Positions 1-44,432 of a stretch of DNA of 64,000 nt are shown in pieces. Each line of letters starts with the position of its first letter. The first letter of the stretch is position 1. The notes beneath the pieces are model-generated. The model saw nothing but the letters and a program-made list of their open reading frames with translations. It had not been told where the DNA came from and did not search any database. The stretch lies in the sequence record PV662128.1. The stretch is one strand, 5' to 3'. Both the position numbers and the translations under genes were made by a program.

Positions 1-1049
1 TGAGCAAGCTAGATTCCTTAGTGAAGGTCCCAAATGGGTGGCGTAGAATGGGCGACATCAAGATTAATGATGTAGTCAGTACTCCAGATGGGGGGACTGC
101 TAGAGTCTCTGGTGTTTATCCTCAGGGCGTTAAATCGCTATACCGTGTTACGTTTTATGATGGTCGTACCGCAGATGTTGGGGCAGAACATTACTGGACC
201 GTTTGGGATCCGGGTAAAGGGGATGGTGGGATCTGGCGTACACTCACTACTCTGGAGTGTCAACAACGCATGACCGAGATGAAGAAAGCGCATAACTATC
301 TTTCCGTTCCTTTGGTTCAGCCCGATAATGATCCAGATAAGAAACTTGCCATTCATCCTTATGTTCTAGGCGTGTTGTTGGGAGACGGGGGGATTTCTGG
401 CAGTTCTGTTTTAATAACCAAACCTGACAAAGAACTTTACGATAAAGTCCGCGGCCTCATTCCTGATACTCTGGTCGCTGAATGGCGTGATGAAAAAACA
501 TTCGTCATTAAGCGCAAGCCTGATGTTGAAGAAAAGACCAACGTAATGAAAGAGAACCTTAAAGGCGTTGATCTGATGGGACTTCGGTCCTGGGAGAAAT
601 TTGTTCCTACGGATTATTTAAATGGCTCTTATCGTCAGCGTTTAGAGTTGTTACAAGGCTTACTCGATACCGATGGACACGCAGGCACGGGCGGGAACAT
701 AGAGTATTGTACGACGTCTCCTAAACTCGCTAAAGACTTTGTTTACCTTGCTCGTAGCATCGGTGCTATTTGTAGTTGTAAAGAGCGTCAGACGTATTAT
801 ACCGACAAAGGAGAACGTAAACCTGGTCGGGTTTCTTATCGCATTAGCGTTCGCTATACTAAACCTTGGGAGCTCTTCACATTAAGTCGTAAACGAGATC
901 GTTTAGTTGACAAAACACGAGGGTTAAAATTTAACAGTCGTTTAACCATGCGTTCCATCGAGTATGTGGGGGAAGAAGAGACTCAGTGCATTGAAGTGGA
1001 CCATCCTGATCATCTTTACATCATGGATGATTTCGTCGTCACCCACAAC
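1..1049 (+). mobile_element. Class 3 intein with LAGLIDADG homing endonuclease in terL (N-terminus at or just before the window start)
   Basis: Block B GAEHYW, LAGLIDADG motifs VLGVLLGDGG and LLQGLLDTDG, block F TQCI, block G FVVTHN followed by Thr (codon 1050-1052). Confidence 0.92.
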
Positions 1050-2852
1050 ACGGTTTCTGCTCAGAGCATTATGTTCTGGTTAACTTACCTAACCGGGCAG
1101 TCTTACGAATCCCACTTAATCACCCTGAAAGACGATAACCGTAGTCAGTTCGTAGAGGCGCTAAAGGGTATCCGTAACAATATCCCGAGTTACTTGACCA
1201 ACGTAGGGTGGCGGGATAAGGATAGTGGTAACTCGTTAACCTATAGTGCTTTCGGGGATGATAAGAAGAACATCTTCCGTATTAGCGTGCCGCAAATCGG
1301 TAGAGAGGCGGCTCGTAACGTCGGTCGTGGTTTGACTATCAAAACCCGTATGATTGACGAACCAGCATATATCAACTTCATGGAAGAGATACTTAACGGT
1401 GCAGGTCCTAGTACGCTAACGGCTCGTGCTAACGCCAGAAGAATAGGCGAACCCTATGGGACGGGATTCATTACCACGCCTGCGAGTAAAACGACAGCAA
1501 GCGGCGAATACATGTACAACATGTTGATGGATGCGACTGAGTGGCGGGAAACCTTCTTCGATAGTTTTAACGAGAGTCATCTCTACCAACGTTTGATTAA
1601 AGCGAGTCCTGTGGAGGGAATCACCAGCCCTACAGTAGGCATGGTTTTCAACTACTTGCAGTTGGGTAGGAATAAGGACTGGGTTAAGAAAACCATAGAC
1701 GAGTTAAAACTCAGTTTAGCCGAAGCGAAGATCGACCTGTTGTTAATGTGGGACGATGCCAGTAAAGGTAAACTTTTCGACGACTTAACCCGAGAAGCGT
1801 TAAACGAGGGTAAGAGAGGAATACTCTGGAGTCAGGAAGTAGGGAACACGGGTTTGTTCATCGACTGGTTTATTACACCAGAAGAACACACCCGAATCAT
1901 TACCGGGGATAGTCAAACCTTTTACGTAGTCGGTTGTGATACCTCTGCTGCGCAAAACCGAGACGCCTGTACGGTCGTGATAAGAGACGTCATGGACGGT
2001 AAAGTTATTGGGGTGGGTCGTTATCCAATAGCCTACTTAATGGACGTAGGTGAAGTATTACAGACGATCCTGTTAGAGATTAAGAACAGCTTACTGATCA
2101 TCGAGCGTAACTTCGCGCATCACATGATCGACCAACTGCTCGTTAGTCTTCCTGCATTGGGAATCGATCCCTTTAAACGTATCTTTAATCAGATCGTACA
2201 AGATCCGGTTAAGTACGAAAAAGAAATGATCGAGTTTAAACAACGTAACTTCGCTAACCGGGACAGTCACTTCTATCTGAAATTCAAACATCTGTTTGGA
2301 TTCGTTACCAACGCCAGAACGCGTGATGAGGTATATAGTTTTATCCAAGAAGCGGTAGGAACCACTGGGGATAAAATTTATTATACTAAACTCATCGACG
2401 AACTGGTTAACCTCAAAGAGAAGGGGGGTAGGATTGACCACGAAAACAATAAACACGATGACCTGGTCATCGCTTGGTTGTTGGGATTCTGGTTCTTGAA
2501 ACTGGGTAACAATAAAAGTGAATACGGAATTCCTCCTGGCATTAGTATGAGTAAAATCACGCTTATGCGGGTTGGGGATAGTAGAAACGAAGAAACCAAC
2601 GGTGCGCACAATGAAGCGATGGTTGCGCTCTACCGTCGTAAAGTTGAAGAGCTGAGTGACAGACTTATTAAAACCACCGACAATACCGTAGCTCAAAGGA
2701 TCGAGTACATGATTGACAAGCTCAGTAGCATGATCCCTCAAGATAAGCGTAAGAGTTTGACTATCGACGAAATCGTTAGGAAGGCCAAGGAAGAGAGAAG
2801 CCGTCGAGTATTGGAAGCACGTAAGTTACGCAGTCGTTACGCGTACATGTAA
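1..2852 (+). CDS. terL: Terminase large subunit, 5'-truncated by the window edge, intein-containing
   Basis: Frame is open from base 3. After the intein end (THN/T) come TVSAQS, Walker B-like TRMIDEPAY and RNase H-like nuclease motifs VVGCDTS and HDDLVIAW. Position matches phiKZ-like terminases. Confidence 0.85.
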   Translation, partial: SKLDSLVKVPNGWRRMGDIKINDVVSTPDGGTARVSGVYPQGVKSLYRVTFYDGRTADVGAEHYWTVWDPGKGDGGIWRTLTTLECQQRMTEMKKAHNYLSVPLVQPDNDPDKKLAIHPYVLGVLLGDGGISGSSVLITKPDKELYDKVRGLIPDTLVAEWRDEKTFVIKRKPDVEEKTNVMKENLKGVDLMGLRSWEKFVPTDYLNGSYRQRLELLQGLLDTDGHAGTGGNIEYCTTSPKLAKDFVYLARSIGAICSCKERQTYYTDKGERKPGRVSYRISVRYTKPWELFTLSRKRDRLVDKTRGLKFNSRLTMRSIEYVGEEETQCIEVDHPDHLYIMDDFVVTHNTVSAQSIMFWLTYLTGQSYESHLITLKDDNRSQFVEALKGIRNNIPSYLTNVGWRDKDSGNSLTYSAFGDDKKNIFRISVPQIGREAARNVGRGLTIKTRMIDEPAYINFMEEILNGAGPSTLTARANARRIGEPYGTGFITTPASKTTASGEYMYNMLMDATEWRETFFDSFNESHLYQRLIKASPVEGITSPTVGMVFNYLQLGRNKDWVKKTIDELKLSLAEAKIDLLLMWDDASKGKLFDDLTREALNEGKRGILWSQEVGNTGLFIDWFITPEEHTRIITGDSQTFYVVGCDTSAAQNRDACTVVIRDVMDGKVIGVGRYPIAYLMDVGEVLQTILLEIKNSLLIIERNFAHHMIDQLLVSLPALGIDPFKRIFNQIVQDPVKYEKEMIEFKQRNFANRDSHFYLKFKHLFGFVTNARTRDEVYSFIQEAVGTTGDKIYYTKLIDELVNLKEKGGRIDHENNKHDDLVIAWLLGFWFLKLGNNKSEYGIPPGISMSKITLMRVGDSRNEETNGAHNEAMVALYRRKVEELSDRLIKTTDNTVAQRIEYMIDKLSSMIPQDKRKSLTIDEIVRKAKEERSRRVLEARKLRSRYAYM

Positions 2853-3173: not shown

Positions 3174-3779
3174 TTAGTTTTTAATGTAATCGACCAACGC
3201 TTCAAAATCACCGTCGTAGAAATACGGTTTAATTTTGATTAAAGAACAAGCCGCAGACAGAGCATTTTCGTAACGATGAACGAATCGCTCAAAATACTCT
3301 CGGTTGAGAAGACGGGTTTCTTGATCATCTAAAACCGATCTGGATCCCGCTCTTTGTAAAAACGTATCGTGATTGATTTTTACAAAGATAAGTTTATCGG
3401 GGTACATTTGGGTGTTGAATATTTTTAAAGCCTTTACGTTGCGTTCTATAACACTGTAAAGACCTATTCGACCATTACCCTGATAAACCGCAGTAGAAAT
3501 AAAACAGCGATCGGAGATAACTGTCTTCCCTTGATTTAAAGCAGGAACAACAACTTTATCTCCTAACTCTATTCTCTGAGCAATAGCGAGATAAAGTTTT
3601 GCTTCTTCACAAATCCCGTTATCGATAATGAGATTACGGATGGTTAACAAAGAGTCTGGAGACTTAGCCGGTTCTTCTACCTGAAGAATATCGTAGCTAT
3701 CTGCTTTCAATCTCTCCGTTAGTTGTTTGGTTAAAGTTGACTTACCCGCTAAGTCCATGCCTTCGAGAACAATGTACAT
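3174..3779 (-). CDS. tmk: Thymidylate (dTMP) kinase
   Basis: P-loop YIVLEGMDLAGKST, EEP motif, ISDRCFISTAVYQG. Confidence 0.92.
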   Translation of the reverse strand: MYIVLEGMDLAGKSTLTKQLTERLKADSYDILQVEEPAKSPDSLLTIRNLIIDNGICEEAKLYLAIAQRIELGDKVVVPALNQGKTVISDRCFISTAVYQGNGRIGLYSVIERNVKALKIFNTQMYPDKLIFVKINHDTFLQRAGSRSVLDDQETRLLNREYFERFVHRYENALSAACSLIKIKPYFYDGDFEALVDYIKN

Positions 3780-3849: not shown

Positions 3850-4215
3850 ATGACCGAAGAAGAGTTTGATGATGAAGTCGAACAAACAGCGAATCTTCAT
3901 AACCTCACAATTCCTTATGCCGAATATATCGTTATTAAAAAACTAGTTGGCCCTGAGTTAACATTTGGATTACTTCAGCATCTCGAACATCGGAACGTCC
4001 TTCATACCAAAGAAATAAAAAGTTTAAAATTATACATCTTCGATTATTACAACAATCTTAAACCGGGGATGGTTTTCGCTTATAATCAAGAAGAAGCGAT
4101 CGCCATGATCAAAGAAGCGGGAATTACGGGTCAACCAGATAAGTTCTATTCTTCGGTTAAAGAGATTGAAATTCCTGTCGATCCTATTTATATTCGTTAC
4201 GCCGCTGGAGAATAA
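3850..4215 (+). CDS. Hypothetical protein
   Basis: AGGAG RBS; first gene of a tightly packed + strand run. Confidence 0.7.
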   Translation: MTEEEFDDEVEQTANLHNLTIPYAEYIVIKKLVGPELTFGLLQHLEHRNVLHTKEIKSLKLYIFDYYNNLKPGMVFAYNQEEAIAMIKEAGITGQPDKFYSSVKEIEIPVDPIYIRYAAGE

Positions 4216-10684: not shown

Positions 10685-11184
10685 TGAGTTTCAAGACCGG
10701 AGAGATTTCCGTCTCGATAAAAATTCAACTGAGAATTTTTACTCTGGGGTTTTCGCCGGATATAATATTCCACTGCGAGAATTTAAAAACTCATCGAGTT
10801 TTATTTCCCGTATAAAATACTCCGTGCCGTAAGATAACACCCCACAGAAAAAACCTCGCCTTCGGAAAAATTCCTCGAAGGCGAGCTGCCATGATCTCAC
10901 TCGAGCAAGAATCAATCCGACATACAATCCCAATCGTTCCAAATATTTTCCATCGGGATTTTGGTTATCTGTAAATTTTTACACATGAATCTATTTTATA
11001 TTTGTATTTTTCTCGCGTGCGGATATTCTAATTTTTCAAAGATAATCTAAAACCGATTCTCGTTCTGGGTTTTTTATTTTTCTGTGTTTTGATTTTTCAA
11101 ATCCAATTTTCAAAATTCAAAAATCTAAATCTAAAAAATCTAAAATTTTAATACTCAAAAAAATCAAATTTTCCTAGGGGTCCT

Positions 11185-11413
11185 TATTACGCGTGCGTAC
11201 GCACGCACGCATATAAAAAACAAATATAATACGTAGTATTATATTTTCATTTGTTTTTATATTTTTAATTTATTAAAAATATATTAATATAAATTATTAT
11301 AAATATATTTTTTATTAGTTTGTTTTTTATAAACAAATATATAAATATATATTTATATATATTTATATTCATTAGGCGCGCGCCAGCGTGCGTATGTGCG
11401 CGCACGCGTAATA
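11185..11413. repeat. GC-rich inverted repeats flanking a ~94% AT core (origin-like element)
   Basis: tattacgcgtgcg (11185-11197) and cgcacgcgtaata (11401-11413) are exact reverse complements, extending imperfectly to ~27 bp. 11211-11374 has 10 G/C in 164 nt. Confidence 0.75.
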
Positions 11414-11816
11414 GAGAAGGGGTTATAAAAATACGAGATTTAACCTGAGAAATTATCCAGAAAAATCACACAGAGTAAAAATTTATTAACCGGAACGATT
11501 TTGAGAAGATTTAATACCCCACCTAGGAATTCGTATCGGTCGGATGAAAAAACGTCTTAGAAATCAACACAGGAAGTTTTAGAGGGTATTTCGATCGAGT
11601 TCTCAGGAAAGGATTATTCGGTGAATAAAAATATTTTAATCGGGGTAATTAATTTTTACCGCAAATTAGATTTATCGAGACGAGAAGATTTAATCACAAA
11701 GTAATTTCTTACGGAGAGCATAATCTTCTGAACAGGACTGAGATCTCGAATAGCCAGATGGAAATTATCCATCCGTTCGAAAGTTAACCTGAATTACCCC
11801 TAAGAGGCCAAATCCT

Positions 11817-12551
11817 ATGCAACCAGCTAGCCCATGGAAAAACAACAAACACGTTAAACCACAAGATAACACCACCGCAGACCGGTACGAATCTCTTCTG
11901 CGTGAATTACCTGATGCGCTCAATGCTACTCCCAGAGAGCCAGGTTACTTGATCGCAACCAAAAAGATTTTATTAGTACTGGAAATTCTCGAAGGAACTC
12001 GATTGTCAGTTCGTGACGTGATGGAAAACGAGAACCTGATTCGTAAAGTTCACGAGTTACTGGTGGAGTTGGGTTGGAAGCAAGCGATTAGCCGAGGGAC
12101 TCAGGTTTTTGTTACTCACCAGGATTTAATTAAACCGAGTATTTACCGATTGATCGATCTCGATGAAGCTGCGATAGGTTACGCCAAAGAGATCACGGAT
12201 AATATTTTATTAGACCGTCGGTTCAGTGTTCGCGTAGACGGTAACGATATCCGGATTCTTCCTGGAGACCGCAGCGCGAGTAATCCGTTTAGTCTGCTGT
12301 CCGCTAACGTAGTAAGCGGTTGGCGTAAGGCAATACGAGAGTACGATAAAACCGTCACGGGTAATCTTATTGGACATCTGACGGTTATCGGCGAAGATAC
12401 GATGAGTTGCCCGCTCGATCTAAAACTCATCTTCGGCCTACTGGATTACCTCGGTTGGCCGGAAATGTATTTAACCGGTGAACAGATCTTATTGAGTAAC
12501 CCCATGGGTGATTATCAAACCCTCGAGGTGAATTATATCGATCCTGAGTAA
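11817..12551 (+). CDS. Hypothetical protein (244 aa)
   Basis: GAGG RBS; only long ORF between two non-coding blocks. Confidence 0.7.
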   Translation: MQPASPWKNNKHVKPQDNTTADRYESLLRELPDALNATPREPGYLIATKKILLVLEILEGTRLSVRDVMENENLIRKVHELLVELGWKQAISRGTQVFVTHQDLIKPSIYRLIDLDEAAIGYAKEITDNILLDRRFSVRVDGNDIRILPGDRSASNPFSLLSANVVSGWRKAIREYDKTVTGNLIGHLTVIGEDTMSCPLDLKLIFGLLDYLGWPEMYLTGEQILLSNPMGDYQTLEVNYIDPE

Positions 12552-12803
12552 TTCGCAACCACAGTCCGATGTTATTAGTAAAGATCTTTGGGCTCCCTGT
12601 TGATTAACTAGCGACCCAACCTCATCTCTTTGAACCTCCTTACCACGAGCGAGATAGCCAAAGTAGCTAGGGATTTTCAGGGGGTTCAATCCCCATTTTC
12701 GTTAATCTTATTAGACCCACTGTCCTAAGCCCATGAAGCCTTGAAATCTCTCCTGTAGCAGACAAAGTTTTCGTTCGGTGGGATAGATTAACGTTTTTCT
12801 TCA

Positions 12804-12876
12804 CGTCGTGTTATCTGATGAGTCTTCGACGCTAAACAAGACGAAACCTAATGAATCTATTTTATTAGGTCATAAT
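12804..12876 (+). ncRNA. Hammerhead ribozyme (type I), predicted cleavage after C12871 (GUC)
   Basis: Core CUGAUGA 12815-12821; stem II GUCUU/AAGAC; GAAA 12843-12846; stem III ACCUAAU/AUUAGGU; stem I GUUAU/AUAAU; loop II CGACG can pseudoknot with CGUCG 12804-12808. Confidence 0.87.
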
Positions 12877-13510
12877 TCAACCTAAGCGTTGAACGGGCAG
12901 TTAGGGGCAATGGTCCCCGAGGTCTTCAGCTTCTTCGCCTGCCCGCACTAAAAAGTTCTTTCATGATTAGGCGCGCCGCACTCTACGAGCGGACAATAAG
13001 CAACCGAAAGTGGGAGAGAAAGAAGCGTGTCCGGTCGCTTGCCGGAAAGTTGGTTTAGGCGGGTTTCTTCCCAACCCAAACGACGCTGCCCAAGATAGGG
13101 CTGCAAGTCGTATTAGCGAATTATACCGGCATGCGGGGTTTCCGCGATAAGCCGGGTTAGCTACGGGTAAGAAACCGGCCGGAGTAATCAGCCTTTCGTA
13201 TTCGGGTAACGTGAGTTATCGTAGAGATATCTCTGAGGGTTAGGCCAACCCCCGACGTTCTCCGAGTCCGAAGGGAAGCTTGCTCAGCTTCACAGAAACT
13301 CCAAAATCTCAGACGGTCACACCTCGTAATCTTACGGCAGTATGATTGCCTATTCGTCCTTTGTCGCTCACCAAGGGGCGAGTAGGAAACCTCTGCCACG
13401 GCGTTTCGATTGCTTGCTTTTGTCATAACCCTTCTGTATAGGTTGAGTGTTAACTTCCCCAAGAGTATAACCTGTTATCTCTCTCTTCGTGAGAAGTCGG
13501 AGATAATGGG
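12872..13510 (+). ncRNA. Candidate large structured ncRNA downstream of the hammerhead; 3' boundary uncertain
   Basis: No credible ORF, visibly GC-richer than its flanks, many nested helices (12894-12900/12939-12945, 13030-13034/13042-13046, 13080-13084/13107-13111, 13126-13130/13151-13155). Confidence 0.5.
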
Positions 13511-13531
13511 ATAAATTCTTAGGAGTTCGTT

Positions 13532-13720
13532 ATGTACACATACCAGTATACCGTGCGATACCGAATACCTAATTCTGTGTTTACGACCTACAGCGGAGAA
13601 ATTACTTCTGACTGTTTGCTCAATAACGCTAATCGCATTTTTGATGTCTTGCGTACTGAAGTTCATAAGGCTGTTAACGTTGACTCGTTTAGCATTACGA
13701 GCTTCAAGCTGAAAGAATAA
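13532..13720 (+). CDS. Small hypothetical protein (62 aa)
   Basis: Strong AGGAG RBS. Confidence 0.6.
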   Translation: MYTYQYTVRYRIPNSVFTTYSGEITSDCLLNNANRIFDVLRTEVHKAVNVDSFSITSFKLKE

Positions 13721-13890
13721 GTCGAGCTACGCGCTCCGTCTACCTTAGGACCGGAAGTAGTTACGACTTAGGGGGAAAGAAGAGTCGTGCCTTTGAGTAC
13801 CCCAACCTCATTCGTGTGGTGATCTTTCACATCATCTCATGGATATTGCTACATCATCATCATTAAAGTTCTACCATGAATTTTATTCCT

Positions 13891-13922
13891 TCCAGTAGGG
13901 TTCGTCCCTACTGGACTTTTTT
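13891..13922 (+). terminator. Intrinsic terminator
   Basis: tccagtaggg/ccctactgga stem plus T tract. Confidence 0.8.
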
Positions 13923-24415: not shown

Positions 24416-25834
24416 GTGAACGGAGACGTTATGGATCAGTACGGCGATCGTATTATTGATGCATTAACAGCGCCTGAATTTTCATCGTTGCAACCAGAGG
24501 CTCAGTTTAAAACTTACGCCAAACAATACGGCGGCGATCTTTCTGACGATAAACGTTTTTATGAGCCGCTATATCCCGACTTCACTGACTATAACCGTTT
24601 GCATGATACCGCTAAGGTTGATCCGGTTTACCTGAACGATTTCGATTTTTGTTTGGAAGAAGACCGAGAACGAATCGCATCCTTAATTCGTATGGACTTC
24701 AACACCGACACATTCGAAACCGTGGCGAGATGTAGTTGTGGTCACTTGAAGGGCAACTATTTGTTGGGTCAGAAGAGATCGTGCCCCATATGTCAATCCC
24801 TTGTAGAGAAAGTCGTGGAGACTTCCTTAGATACTAAGGTGTGGGTCAGGGTTCCAGAAGGCGTGGTTGCATTTATCAGCCCGGCTTATTACAAAACCTT
24901 CTTATCGAAGATCGCGACCAATTCTCCAAAGATTGAGATCGTGACTTGGCTCATTGATCCGTCTTATCGTCGGGGTAGTCGAGCACAACATACTGAGTCG
25001 GGTCGTCGCATGTTGGCTGAACTCGATAAACTCGGAATAGTCCCTGGGCTTAATAGCTTTATACTGAACGCGGACAAATTCATGGAACACTTCCTTGTTG
25101 GTGAAGGAAGAGGCGCTGTGAGCATGAAACCAGCTGACGGTAAAAAGCATTTGGATAAGTATTACGAATATCGTCATCTTATCTTCCCGCGCTATTTGTC
25201 GGTACCCAATAAACTCGCTACCATCATCGAGCAAGATGGTAAAGATAAGTACGTTTCTTCAACCCAATTGAAAACCTCGGCAATCTACCAATCTATTGCG
25301 GATACGAGAGATTCTACTGAGTTTTATAAATGTACGATTAAGGATCTTAAAGAGAACGCTGATATCGTCGGGAAGGCGATAGTTCGATTAGGTAAACAGA
25401 ACTCTGATAACTATAAGAGTCAGCTGTTTGCTAAATCGAGCCTGATACGTAAACACGTCATCGCGGGATCGTTATCTTTATCAGGTCGTGGTGTTATCAC
25501 GTCAACGACCGGATTGCATGATGCTGGTGTTGCTAAGATACCTTGGATCATGGCAGTAGCTATGCTGAAGAAACACATCCTGGGATATCTTTACCGTTTA
25601 GGGTACAGTCCCCTGAGAGCTGAAAGTGTAATCAGTACAGCTGCGCACCAGGTCGTCCCGGTTATCGATCAATTCTTTACCAAGCACGAAAAGCAAAAAG
25701 ACATTGTCTGCATTTTAGGAAGAAACCCATCAATTCAGTACCTGTCAGCAAAAGCCTTCTTTATGTCGATCAACCGAGATTTAGAAGACGAATCGATAAA
25801 CTTACCGATACTCTCAGTTAAAACCTTCAATGCT
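24416..25834 (+). CDS. nvRNAP beta-prime N-terminal subunit (phiKZ gp55-like), exon 1
   Basis: Zn finger CSCG..CPIC, RKHVIAG, GRNPS; the frame reaches FNA of the NADFDGD motif and then runs into intron sequence. Confidence 0.88.
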
Positions 25835-26199
25835 AAACATATTGGCCCAGTAGACGCGAAAGCTCTGCTGCGTACTCTCTCTAATTGCTGGAAACTCCTA
25901 AAGCTCGTTCACCTCGTATAGAGGGGTCGAAAGACAGAAACAACGAACGAGATATCTCACGCTAACCAATAATGCTAAAAGATAAATAATGGGTTACCTA
26001 GCAGCGAACCCTACCTCGGTAGGAGACGTTCAACGACTAGAGCTGAAATGCTCGTAGGATCCTAGTGTGGATCCGAAATGGGAGAGGACCTAAGTTTGAC
26101 AGTAGTCAAATATGGTTAAGATATAGTCTGTGCCCTCAGGAAATCTGAGGGAGGGTGTCTCAGCACACCTGCTCCATATGGAACGGAGTGGACAATCAG
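25835..26199 (+). ncRNA. Group I intron 1 (IA2-like), no ORF
   Basis: 5' exon ends in U; P AAUUGCUGGAAA 25883-25894; Q UAGCAG; R GUUCAACGACUAG 26028-26040; P7.1 and P7.2 hairpins; S AAGAUAUAGUCU 26118-26129; P9 hairpins; terminal G 26199. Confidence 0.92.
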
Positions 26200-41801: not shown

Positions 41802-44432
41802 GTGCGTAAGACGGTGGTCATTAACAAAGCGCACAATTACCTCAGAATAACGGATTATTCTGAGGAGTTTGTGAACAGAGTGATAATGCCGTTCTGTCGA
41901 CGGTATCTTTATAAGTACGCCAAAAAACCCATCCCCGGAACAAGAAAAACTCAGAGTTACGTGAGTCATGTGTTCGCTCGTATGAATAATGACAAAACGG
42001 AATTCCGTATATCCGCGGGTCTTCTAAAAGAATTCCTGAGTTTTATGGAATATTGCGGGTATGCTCCTAACAGGGCAGAAATCCGAGATGTCCCTGAAAT
42101 TGTTCCGACTAAGGTAGAGTTCGAATGGAAAAAACCCTTTGGAGAAAGACGAGACCACCAAGTGGAATGGTGCGAATATCATTTAGCTTCAGGGGGTATC
42201 AAGGTTAATAATGCTGGGACAGGGCAGGGTAAAGCCGGAGTACTGTCTTCACGTATCAAAATCCCTGGTGGTTGGAGCACCATGGGAGAGATGAAAGTCG
42301 GGATGAAGGTTATAGCCTGGGATGGAACTGTCGCCAGAGTGAATGGGGTTTATCCCCAAGGTGTAACTAAAGTTTACCGAGTGCATTTCGGCGATGGACG
42401 TTATACCGACGTTAACCCAGATCACCTATGGAAGGTCTACGACGTTAGTTTATCAAAAAGTCTGAGAACCAGAGCTTACTCTGAATTAACTCAGGAAGAG
42501 AAAGATAATCACCGGTGGAGGATCTATACTACCGCTGAACTTATCGAACGTTTAAAATTGTCGGAACCTAGACTTTACATCCCTCTGTGTTTATCCGAAC
42601 AGAATCCCGATGCCAAGCTCCCAATGGATCCTTATCTGTTAGGAGTCATCTTAGGAGATGGCTGTACCAAGTCCACCACCCCAACTATAACCAAACCTTA
42701 CCAACAACTCTTTGATAAAATCCAGTCTAAGTTACCTGATTGGATGGAATGTAACTGGATGGACAAAAAGAAGGGGAGTTTTAGCTTAAAGCGCAAAAGC
42801 CAGCTAGGCGGGGATAGGAGTAATTGGGTAAATAAAGCTCTGATATCGATGGATGTCATGGGCCTTAGGTCTTGGGAGAAGTTTATACCTGACGTTTACT
42901 TCAATGGTTCTACGGAGCAGCGTTTAGAGCTCCTCAGAGGGCTGCTGGATACTGACGGAACGGTAGGAAAGAATAAATCCGTTTCTTTCAGTAGTTCGTC
43001 TGAAAAACTTTCTAAAGGTGTTCAGTACTTAGTTCGTAGTTTGGGGGGGATTGCTAAGATATCTAACCGGATTACTCACTATACGTATAAAGGAGAACGT
43101 AAAGAGGGGAGGATGGATTATCGAGTATTCATTCGATTCCCTAACCCTGAATTGTTATTTACGCTAGACCACAAAAAAGAGAGGGCGAATAAAGGTCAGT
43201 ACTCGAATATCCTTAAATTAAGGGTAGTTGACATCGAGGAAAGGCCCGATGAAGAGACTCAGTGTATTTCAATAGACCATCCAGACCGTTTATACGTTAC
43301 GGATGGTTTCATTGTAACTCACAACACCTACATGTCTACCGACACAATGGTGAATATGGGTGTGAGAACTCTTATCACCGCCCTGCCTAGATATATTCCT
43401 ATATGGAGCAAATCTCTCTTCGAATACCTTAATCTCAAAGTTGAGGATGTGGTTTACGTCGAGTCTGGGGAAATAGAAGAGGTTGCAGAAAATATTCAGA
43501 AAGGGATTATTAATCCCAAAGTTATTATTTTGCCGCTGACCAGGATAGATACCCACTATAAACGGATGAGAGAGGATGACACCGTTCCAGACTTAGATGA
43601 ACTCTACGCTAAGATGGGAATCGGGTTGAGGATCATGGATGAAGGACACGAATCTGTTTATCAGGTTTATATGTCCATGCTTTACGGTAATTTCTCCAAG
43701 ACCCTGGCGTTGTCAGCAACCCTGAAAGCGGATGATCAATTGATTAACAGGATCTATAGTTATATTTATCCTTACAACATTCGTTTAAAGGAAGGAGAGC
43801 AGAAGAAATACATCGATGTTTATGCTTACCATCACTGGATTGATATTAGGAAGTTCAGGATTAACCCCAGAGGATTTGGGGGGTATAACCACGTGAAGTT
43901 CGAACAAGGGATTATGAAGTCCCCTTACCTGCTCGGTAGGTATTACGAACTCTGTAAACAGGCGTTTGAAGAGTTTTATGTCAAAGACTTGTTACCCGAG
44001 CAAAAAGCCCTCTGGTTCTTTGCGACGGTAGAAATGTGTGTCAACATGTTGGAGTTCTTTAAAAGGGACTACCCGGAAATGGATTTCGGGAAATACACCA
44101 ACGAGGAATCGTCTAAGGCGGATACCAAGGATAATTACCTCAAGCACCAAGTCCTGATTACCACTCCTCAGAGTTGCAGCACCGGTAAAGATATTGAGAA
44201 ACTCTACGTGGCGTTTAGTCCCTATGCGGTTTCTTCTAAACAGCGTAACGCTCAGTCATTAGGGCGTTTAAGGGAAATAACGAAATGGTGGCCCGATCTT
44301 TCTCCTAAGTACGTTTACTTCGTTTGTCAGAATGTGGACAAGCAAGTTGACTACCATCGCAAGCGAATGGAGGAGTTCGCCAACAAAGCGAAGAGCATTA
44401 CCAATATCAATAGCGGGCATTCCATTCCTTAG
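41802..44432 (+). CDS. SF2 helicase (phiKZ gp75-like) with intein
   Basis: Walker A GTGQGK/T split by the intein, Walker B MDEGHE, motif III SAT, motif VI QSLGRLR. Confidence 0.88.
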   Translation: MRKTVVINKAHNYLRITDYSEEFVNRVIMPFCRRYLYKYAKKPIPGTRKTQSYVSHVFARMNNDKTEFRISAGLLKEFLSFMEYCGYAPNRAEIRDVPEIVPTKVEFEWKKPFGERRDHQVEWCEYHLASGGIKVNNAGTGQGKAGVLSSRIKIPGGWSTMGEMKVGMKVIAWDGTVARVNGVYPQGVTKVYRVHFGDGRYTDVNPDHLWKVYDVSLSKSLRTRAYSELTQEEKDNHRWRIYTTAELIERLKLSEPRLYIPLCLSEQNPDAKLPMDPYLLGVILGDGCTKSTTPTITKPYQQLFDKIQSKLPDWMECNWMDKKKGSFSLKRKSQLGGDRSNWVNKALISMDVMGLRSWEKFIPDVYFNGSTEQRLELLRGLLDTDGTVGKNKSVSFSSSSEKLSKGVQYLVRSLGGIAKISNRITHYTYKGERKEGRMDYRVFIRFPNPELLFTLDHKKERANKGQYSNILKLRVVDIEERPDEETQCISIDHPDRLYVTDGFIVTHNTYMSTDTMVNMGVRTLITALPRYIPIWSKSLFEYLNLKVEDVVYVESGEIEEVAENIQKGIINPKVIILPLTRIDTHYKRMREDDTVPDLDELYAKMGIGLRIMDEGHESVYQVYMSMLYGNFSKTLALSATLKADDQLINRIYSYIYPYNIRLKEGEQKKYIDVYAYHHWIDIRKFRINPRGFGGYNHVKFEQGIMKSPYLLGRYYELCKQAFEEFYVKDLLPEQKALWFFATVEMCVNMLEFFKRDYPEMDFGKYTNEESSKADTKDNYLKHQVLITTPQSCSTGKDIEKLYVAFSPYAVSSKQRNAQSLGRLREITKWWPDLSPKYVYFVCQNVDKQVDYHRKRMEEFANKAKSITNINSGHSIP
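42234..43325 (+). mobile_element. Class 3 intein (364 aa) with LAGLIDADG homing endonuclease
   Basis: Starts with Ala (AGVLSSRIKIP); block B DHLW; LLGVILGDG and LLRGLLDTDG; block F TQCI; block G IVTHN/T. Confidence 0.93.

Follow-up and report, generated by a model that had tools for sequence, protein, structure and literature searches.

The segment at 12804–12876 of the window (the whole 64,000-nucleotide stretch analysed here) is a hammerhead ribozyme by every criterion of sequence and structure, and its catalysis is predicted. The three stems covary among phage homologues, and in six lineages the motif has a fixed position directly ahead of a conserved structured RNA, here called RNA-B. We consider it probable that this is a functional type I hammerhead in a + strand transcript through the surrounding non-coding gap, where it would cut itself and so give RNA-B and the small open reading frame (ORF) that follows a defined 5′-OH end. 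The ribozyme itself is a member, and a recognisable subfamily, of a well known class; the more interesting part of the locus is the downstream RNA, which is possibly a new class.

The phage and the locus

The 1.8 kb around the ribozyme is 100% identical to Raoultella phage VB_ZK_P1 (PV662128.1, 257 kb) and 92–97% identical to the Klebsiella phages KPN8, YC1, phiKp_32 and Miami and to 'Stenotrophomonas' phage BUCTxx100. A gene for a DUF7484 protein and a divergent family B DNA polymerase lie near the ribozyme locus, and a gene for the phage tubulin PhuZ lies downstream (Table 1). The identity to the VB_ZK_P1/Miami group, together with PhuZ, identifies the phage as a Miami-like jumbo phage of the nucleus-forming kind; an earlier note made from the sequence had called it a jumbo phage, and the 257-kb genome with PhuZ bears this out. 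The host label of one relative looks odd: L005 (OR529409.1) was deposited as a Stenotrophomonas maltophilia phage, is nearly identical here to Miami and has about 92% identity to the Klebsiella phages.

The flanking genes and the terminator-like hairpin ahead of PhuZ are all on the + strand, like the ribozyme, and this hairpin is probably the 3′ end of the transcription unit. No promoter was identified for the ribozyme transcript, and a σ70 scan is irrelevant to the polymerases of this phage. A candidate promoter motif common to three lineages, TCCGRTRTWAY, was rejected as it is not enriched in the window (17 observed versus 16.8 expected). The DUF7484 gene and the 244-aa ORF diverge in orientation, and the region 11000–11400 between them is very AT-rich (19–27% G+C) and is likely to be a promoter region; the deposited phiKp_32 genome begins close to it.

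Further elements were seen elsewhere in the window. A group I intron (RF00028, 63.8 bits, E 7.5e-14) at 25825–26151 (+) begins inside the end of a 501-aa ORF without Pfam family (24416–25921) and probably interrupts a gene with a second exon downstream. Two large ORFs, 21–2852 (+) and 41802–44432 (+), contain internal LAGLIDADG_3/Hom_end homing-endonuclease domains (residues 206–260 and 370–431) and look like inteins.

Table 1. Features of the ribozyme locus, in window coordinates.
Feature	Position	Strand	Remarks
244-aa ORF, upstream side of the gap	11817–12551	+	Without family
Non-coding gap with the ribozyme	12552–13531		980 nt, between the 244-aa ORF and the 62-aa ORF
RNA-A, upstream non-coding segment	12552–12803	+	Predicted to stay with the ribozyme in the 5′ product
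T-loop-like hairpin	12680–12694	+	GGGGGUUCAAUCCCC
Pseudoknot, 5′-tail strand	12804–12808	+	CGUCG, complementary to 12827–12831
Stem I, 5′ strand	12810–12814	+	GUUAU, pairs with 12872–12876
Catalytic core, C3–A9	12815–12821	+	CUGAUGA
Stem II	12822–12826/12838–12842	+	GUCUU/AAGAC, 11-nt loop CGACGCUAAAC
Pseudoknot, loop II strand	12827–12831	+	CGACG
Core, G12 A13 A14 A15.1	12843–12846	+	GAAA
Stem III hairpin	12846–12855/12861–12870	+	10 bp, 5-nt loop, closing pair A15.1–U16.1; descriptor search and MFE fold
Predicted scissile bond	C17 (12871)/A1.1 (12872)	+	Position by hammerhead consensus
Stem I, 3′ strand	12872–12876	+	AUAAU, first bases of the predicted 3′ product
RNA-B	12872–13531	+	Predicted cleavage site to p62 start codon; MFE and conservation
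RNA-B core, part 1	13030–13075	+	H1 13030–13046; invariant AAGUUG 13047–13052; H2 GUUGG 13049–13053/CCAAC 13071–13075
RNA-B core, part 2	13188–13279	+	Junction UCAG; H5 CCUUUCG 13192–13198/CGAAGGG 13269–13275; then AAGC
p62, small ORF (62 aa) 3′ of RNA-B	13532–13720	+	AGGAG 7 nt ahead of ATG
Intrinsic-terminator-like hairpin and U-tract	13891–13915	+	10-bp stem with six G–C pairs, then CUUUUUU; ahead of PhuZ
PhuZ (phage tubulin)	14054–15016		PHROG 4733, E 4e-76

The hammerhead and its homologues

The motif is a type I hammerhead with stems I, II and III of 5, 5 and 10 bp and an additional pseudoknot of 5 bp that joins loop II to the 5′ tail. The core-adjacent pairs (G12822–C12842, U12814–A12872 and A12846–U12870) are free of mispairs. 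The MFE folds lack stem I, which is short and weak, and in a nested fold the pseudoknot competes with stem II, as expected. All of the hammerhead elements listed in the earlier note were found on the + strand where it had placed them, with two small corrections: the return strand of stem II is 12838–12842 and not the implied 12839–12843, a trivial shift of one base, and stem III has 10 pairs, three above the earlier count.

An own type I descriptor search returned this motif as the sole good type I hammerhead in the 64 kb; the only other matches on both strands (128 kb) were two 3-bp junk matches. None of 300 dinucleotide-preserving shuffles of the window reached stems of at least 5/5/7 bp, and a loose 3/3/3 descriptor gave 0.17 matches per shuffled window. 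A subfamily covariance model, trained only on L014, L083, L118, L134, L135 and L138, found 12801–12878 of the window at 55.9 bits (E of about 4e-13 under a rough calibration), with the next match at 14.8 bits. This model recovers every other homologue gathered here, and gave nothing in Aphrodite1, PDCC-1, RisingSun or the ribozyme-free contig L133.

The motif reaches the gathering score of no Rfam hammerhead model. Its core does align to the consensus of two of them, both below threshold: RF00008 (Hammerhead_3, type III) at 23.7 bits against a gathering score of 48.5, in the wrong (type III) register, and RF03152 (RAGATH-1-hammerhead) at 19 bits against 56.3, in the correct register. For RF00163 (type I) no match was reported after clan competition. 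Standard Rfam scans therefore miss the present subfamily. These sub-threshold scores might be taken to indicate a non-functional relic or a chance match, and the GenBank annotators assumed a protein-coding region, with − strand ORFs annotated here as Miami gp268 and gp269, KPN8_253 and KPN8_254, and VBZKP1_16; a 101-aa − strand ORF is present at 13157–13462. Such readings are contradicted by the data and we regard them as extremely improbable. The shuffles, the independent model and the covariation described below all speak against chance. A six-frame comparison between lineages rules out a protein-coding reading of the gap, as it reveals the ribozyme core only and no conserved reading frame, whereas the neighbouring p62 is conserved as a protein. 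Moreover, the annotated ORFs vary from genome to genome; the 'hypothetical proteins' called on the − strand within 12948–13462 differ between GenBank records, have no protein conservation across lineages and are probably spurious.

Homologues were gathered through homologues of the flanking proteins and through DNA-pattern scans. The ribozyme is present in the close relatives L001–L005, L010 and L103, in L009 (other contig L131), in which the upstream protein is just 42% identical, and in two syntenic metagenomic phages, L123 and L132, with PhuZ proteins that are 46–49% identical. It was also found in other jumbo-phage contigs, namely L134/L136 (273 kb), L135 (232 kb), L196/L214 (287 kb) and L207/L208 (271 kb), and in other contexts in L014, L083, L118, L138 and L200. 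L208 is Erwinia phage RAY, the locus of which is 99.3–100% identical in the listed relatives (Ea35-70, Simmy50, Special G, Deimos-Minion and others); 16 of the 17 Erwinia phage records that match it do so at 99% identity or more. Salmonella phage SA002 and the Erwinia phages pEa_SNUABM_37 and pEa_SNUABM_48 contain sequence similar to L134. All members are built alike: CGUCG, a U, the first strand of stem I (5 nt), CUGANGA, stem II (5 bp, with the loop CGACGYUAAAN), GAAA, stem III, UH and the second strand of stem I. In L196 and L208, stem III is interrupted by an insertion of about 120 nt.

The subfamily was found solely in phage and metagenome contigs. A pattern scan of a genome collection of 185,579 species gave 57 matches, none of which is a hammerhead or has stem II plus GAAA, and all of which are attributed to chance. 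In IMG/VR neither a PhuZ query nor the exact window-type ribozyme pattern gave a match, and an nhmmer search with the non-coding region gave none in Aphrodite1, PDCC-1 or RisingSun. A repeated element, CGUCGUCUGGACUGAGGAGCUUGCGACGAGGGAAGACGGCGCC, was picked up by chance in nine actinomycete contigs from Actinomadura, Spirillospora and others (L154, L163, L170, L173, L176, L178, L184, L190 and L193); it is arranged in tandem about 100 nt apart in L154 and L163 and is not a hammerhead.

Covariation was assessed in an alignment of 12 sequences from which the variable interior of stem III had been trimmed by hand. In this alignment 92.9% of the pair cells are standard-paired, compared with 75.5% in shuffles and 27–51% in slid registers. 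Both sides have changed in 14 of 21 pairs (among them five in stem I, four in stem II and four in stem III), a number reached in none of 500 shuffles. All five pairs of stem I show such changes, and G12810 is A in KPN8 and phiKp_32, which turns a G·U into an A–U pair. In stem II every cell is paired and four of the five pairs have compensatory changes, and the loop II consensus CGACGYUAAA is kept across the subfamily. The inner four pairs of stem III covary, and A15.1–U16.1 is A–U in all 12 sequences. CUGAUGA is invariant except at N7, the free position of CUGANGA (U to C in L010), and GAAA is invariant in 12 of 12. Position 17 is never G: it is C or A in the aligned homologues and U in L196, which lies outside the alignment.

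The pseudoknot is supported in the same way. Its pair set is unchanged in 10 of the 12 homologues, and two independent compensatory changes were found, in L132 (ACGUCU/AGACGU) and in L200 (CGUCC/GGACG); in L009 one pair is lost. The covariation in all three stems and the compensatory changes in the pseudoknot support the earlier description of a complete hammerhead with a pairing between loop II and the 5′ tail.

The RNAs on either side of the hammerhead

RNA-B (12872–13530) has an MFE of −247.9 kcal/mol, with z = −8.46 on the + strand versus z = −3.36 on the − strand. In comparison with phage Miami, the region 12800–13400 is 96–100% identical per 100 nt, against 76–87% for the gene of the 244-aa protein (84% at the protein level) and 87–95% for most of the 7.8 kb compared. 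The RNA behind the hammerhead evolves several times more slowly than the surrounding protein genes. When 12300–13800 was compared with 4227 Rfam 15 covariance models, only chance-level matches were obtained at E up to 10, and across the whole window no Rfam family was found apart from the group I intron elsewhere.

Six lineages (the window, L132, L123, L135, L196 and L208) share the same order of elements in RNA-B: a hairpin H1 that abuts the invariant AAGUUG, a hairpin H2 starting within GUUG and, at a distance, GCAG, helix H5 and AAGC. The GCAG junction is UCAG in the window, and H5 always starts with CCU and ends with GGG. All four scored pairs of H1 covary in the six lineages; H5 is 95% paired, with compensatory changes in four of seven pairs; and H2 is partly supported, with 81% of its cells paired. 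In the helix alignment as a whole 91% of the cells are paired, compared with 70% in shuffles and 36–55% in slid registers, and 10 of 17 pairs are compensatory, figures that are inflated to an unknown degree because the helices were chosen by eye and the alignment was cut by hand. The changes in H1 and H5 can nevertheless be read directly from the raw sequences. For the 3′ domain, plain MAFFT with RNAalifold gained little (three compensatory pairs, one hairpin misaligned), and while three helices are established, a global fold of RNA-B was not derivable. An RNase P-like reading of GGAAAGU...AAACCGGC was dropped, as just AAGUUG is kept in the other lineages and Rfam was negative.

The combined RNA-B signature occurs once in the window (with H5 at 13192–13275) and once 3′ of the hammerhead in each of L132, L123, L135, L196 and L208. 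It is absent from chimalliviruses without the ribozyme and from the ribozyme loci L134, L138, L200, L014 and L083. In the six lineages RNA-B, at 310–660 nt, always lies directly 3′ of the hammerhead, and the upstream sequence and the downstream ORF vary. That ORF encodes a p62 homologue in four lineages; in L135 its product is an acidic protein of 80 aa, and in L196 and L208 a DUF5617-like protein of 140 aa. The p62 protein matches no Pfam or PHROG family; its homologues occupy the same position just after the structured RNA in L131 (65% identity), L123 (38%) and L132 (36%). In L134, L196 and L208, PhuZ (27–34% identity) and DUF7484 are encoded within a few kb, and the element therefore keeps its genomic neighbourhood even in distantly related members of the group.

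The ribozyme is not specific to RNA-B, since the same subfamily lies ahead of an Amidoligase_2 gene (E 1e-6) in L014 (reverse complement 10909–11523), L083 (reverse complement 1207–1803) and L200 (reverse complement from 435), where a leader of about 200–300 nt lacks the RNA-B motifs. Across all contexts the ribozyme heads a long structured leader or RNA. Judged by sequence comparison, its constant partner in the PhuZ-encoding phages is the downstream RNA and not the upstream one.

RNA-B is either a non-coding RNA in its own right or a leader under unusually strong constraint. An independent role is favoured because RNA-B is nearly invariant and the ORF that follows it changes between lineages. 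On the limited comparative evidence it may represent a new RNA class. A further-reaching reading, which we offer tentatively and hold to be possible rather than probable, is that the RNA released by the hammerhead (12872 to approximately 13400–13531) belongs to a new class of large structured non-coding RNAs in nucleus-forming jumbo phages, with a range covering the Miami-like Klebsiella phages, Erwinia phage RAY and its relatives and several uncultured lineages. Such an RNA would act on its own (as a scaffold, a catalyst or a partner of proteins) rather than as the leader of the small ORF behind it, and the hammerhead would be its dedicated maturation device.

The upstream segment, RNA-A, folds no better than shuffles (z = −1.36) and is not conserved in sequence across all lineages. 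Compared with Miami it is 98% identical in 12600–12699 and has a variable patch at 12720–12780. The sequence ACCUCCUUACCAC at 12634–12646 (+) is found exactly in the window, in L009 (1505) and in L132 (470), three lineages with flanking proteins that are 42–74% identical; it sits in a hairpin loop, the stem of which differs between lineages. Nine of its bases equal the anti-Shine–Dalgarno 3′ end of 16S rRNA. An anti-Shine–Dalgarno reading of the loop loses strength from the more distant lineages, in which CCUAACUUAC or AACUUAC stands at apparently the same place.

Elements related to tRNA occur upstream of the ribozyme in several lineages. ARAGORN found no tRNA or tmRNA genes in the window, and Rfam gave no tRNA or YrlA match there. 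In L134 the MFE fold of 2800–2895 is a cloverleaf, about 20 nt upstream of the ribozyme, and L196 and L208 have, by eye, an acceptor-like stem and a GGYGGUUCAAYUCC T-arm some 60–170 nt before it; the loop in the elements of these three contigs is AACUUAC or CCUAACUUAC. L208 (RAY) has a YrlA-like match of 44.5 bits at 683–746, and in L200 the hammerhead starts directly after a tRNA-Arg-CCA. L133, which is without the ribozyme, has two tRNAs (3525–3596 and 4062–4133) in a 2.1-kb non-coding region ahead of PhuZ. The region ahead of PhuZ in these phages is an RNA-gene island, with tRNAs in L133, tRNA-like folds in L134, L196 and L208, and only a T-loop-like hairpin in the window.

Proposed role and comparison with known systems

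Hammerhead cleavage leaves a 2′,3′-cyclic phosphate and a 5′-OH. In the mechanism that we favour, a + strand transcript would span the gap between the 244-aa ORF and p62 and end at the terminator-like hairpin. Stems II and III would fold during transcription, and pairing of the 5′ tail with loop II would place stem I alongside stem II. Self-cleavage after C12871 would then give a 5′ product of the upstream segment and the ribozyme with a 2′,3′-cyclic phosphate end, and a 3′ product starting at A12872 with a 5′-OH. The latter should be released because it is held only by the weak, A/U-rich 5-bp stem I. The purpose would be to uncouple the downstream unit of RNA-B and the small ORF from upstream transcripts (mRNA, tRNA or tRNA-like RNA) and to provide it with a precise, non-phosphorylated 5′ end. 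A 5′-OH end is a poor entry point for 5′-end-dependent decay by RNase E or RppH, and protection from such decay may be the benefit here. The proposal in the earlier note that the cut creates, at A12872, the 5′ end of the structured RNA downstream gains comparative support, in that a conserved and structured RNA begins right after the hammerhead in six lineages.

The ribozyme could instead serve the upstream RNA, forming the 3′ end of a tRNA-like or regulatory RNA-A in place of a terminator, a task that other small ribozymes perform beside phage tRNAs, with the downstream 5′ end a by-product. The tRNA in L200, the cloverleaf-like element in L134, the acceptor-like stem and T-arm in L196 and L208, the YrlA-like match in L208 and the two tRNAs in the equivalent region of L133 all point this way, as do the T-loop-like hairpin of the window, its hairpin loop conserved in three lineages and the finding that Theta ribozymes process the 3′ ends of phage tRNAs (PMC10879173). 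Against this, the window contains no tRNA or tRNA-like RNA according to ARAGORN and Rfam, RNA-A has no more structure than shuffles, the ribozyme itself would remain after the cut as a 3′ trailer of over 60 nt, and it is the downstream RNA that is conserved across lineages and not the upstream sequence. We therefore consider an upstream role unlikely as the main explanation, although it is compatible with a downstream role and the two are not exclusive.

Two further roles concern the fate of the cleaved ends. The mRNA has a long structured leader and carries the ribozyme in its 5′ part, and in the MFE fold the AGGAG of p62 is inside a hairpin, as might be expected of a decay switch in which an exposed 5′-OH marks or destabilises the p62 message, as with glmS, and RNA-B is a modulating sensor. 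However, every element of the hammerhead, the tertiary pseudoknot among them, is constitutively present, the only alternative pairing found that could gate the core is the competition between the pseudoknot and stem II, and the downstream ORF varies among lineages that share RNA-B; a switch of this kind is distinctly improbable. Least probable of the roles is one end of a circular-RNA pathway, with cleavage followed by ligation by an RtcB-type ligase. The hammerhead products, a 5′-OH and a 2′,3′-cyclic phosphate, are RtcB substrates, and Perreault et al. considered such a fate for phage hammerheads, though they detected no products of this kind (PMC3088659). The present ribozyme is single, with no second hammerhead in the window or in the homologous loci, and the Rfam searches revealed no other self-cleaving class, so that we give this pathway hardly any weight. 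Release of the downstream unit with a defined 5′ end remains the reading that we prefer.

Phage hammerheads have been known since 2011 and their roles are mostly guesses; the present locus is a concrete, testable case of what one is for. In the phages that carry it a protein 'nucleus' keeps transcription apart from translation, and the non-coding RNAs of these phages are almost unexplored. Two recent reviews of nucleus-forming phages mention introns and unspecified phiKZ non-coding RNAs only, and a search of a library of papers found none linking hammerheads with PhuZ, phiKZ, chimallin or nucleus-forming phages. The locus points to an unannotated RNA gene in the laboratory-model phages RAY and Miami that is currently labelled with spurious 'hypothetical proteins'.

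Hammerheads between phage or prophage genes have been documented, and the processing of long phage transcripts was proposed for them (Perreault et al., 2011; PMC3088659). Around 40% of natural hammerheads have a pseudoknot linking stems I and II, and such pseudoknots are required for rapid cleavage at 0.5 mM Mg (PMC3088659). The present motif resembles the type I pseudoknot hammerheads described there in its core, three-helix junction, open stem I and phage-intergenic location, and in having a 5-bp pseudoknot instead of a loop–loop tertiary contact. It differs from them in the signature of its own subfamily (CGUCG-U-N5-core-5 bp-CGACGYUAAAN) and in heading a large conserved RNA in nucleus-forming jumbo phages. 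The Theta ribozymes of gut phages, which are minimal HDV-like ribozymes, are likewise a small self-cleaving class in tailed phages, associated with tRNAs or tRNA-like elements and with RNA end formation (PMC10879173). Theta cuts at the 3′ end of the tRNA (PMC10879173), whereas the predicted cut of the present hammerhead is about 65 nt further on and would define the 5′ end of what follows. Unlike the loci associated with Theta, the window has no detectable tRNA, although one member of the subfamily, in L200, abuts a tRNA-CCA.

RNA-B is similar to GOLLD, ROOL and YrlA (RF02553) in being several hundred nucleotides long, strongly structured and phage-encoded, in a neighbourhood rich in tRNAs or tRNA-like elements. 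GOLLD and ROOL are large phage-associated structured RNAs of unknown function. To our knowledge, none of the GOLLD, ROOL and YrlA families has been described as having a 5′-terminal hammerhead. RNA-B is further set apart from all three by the lack of an Rfam match in the window and by motifs of its own, AAGUUG and GCAG/CCU...GGG/AAGC.
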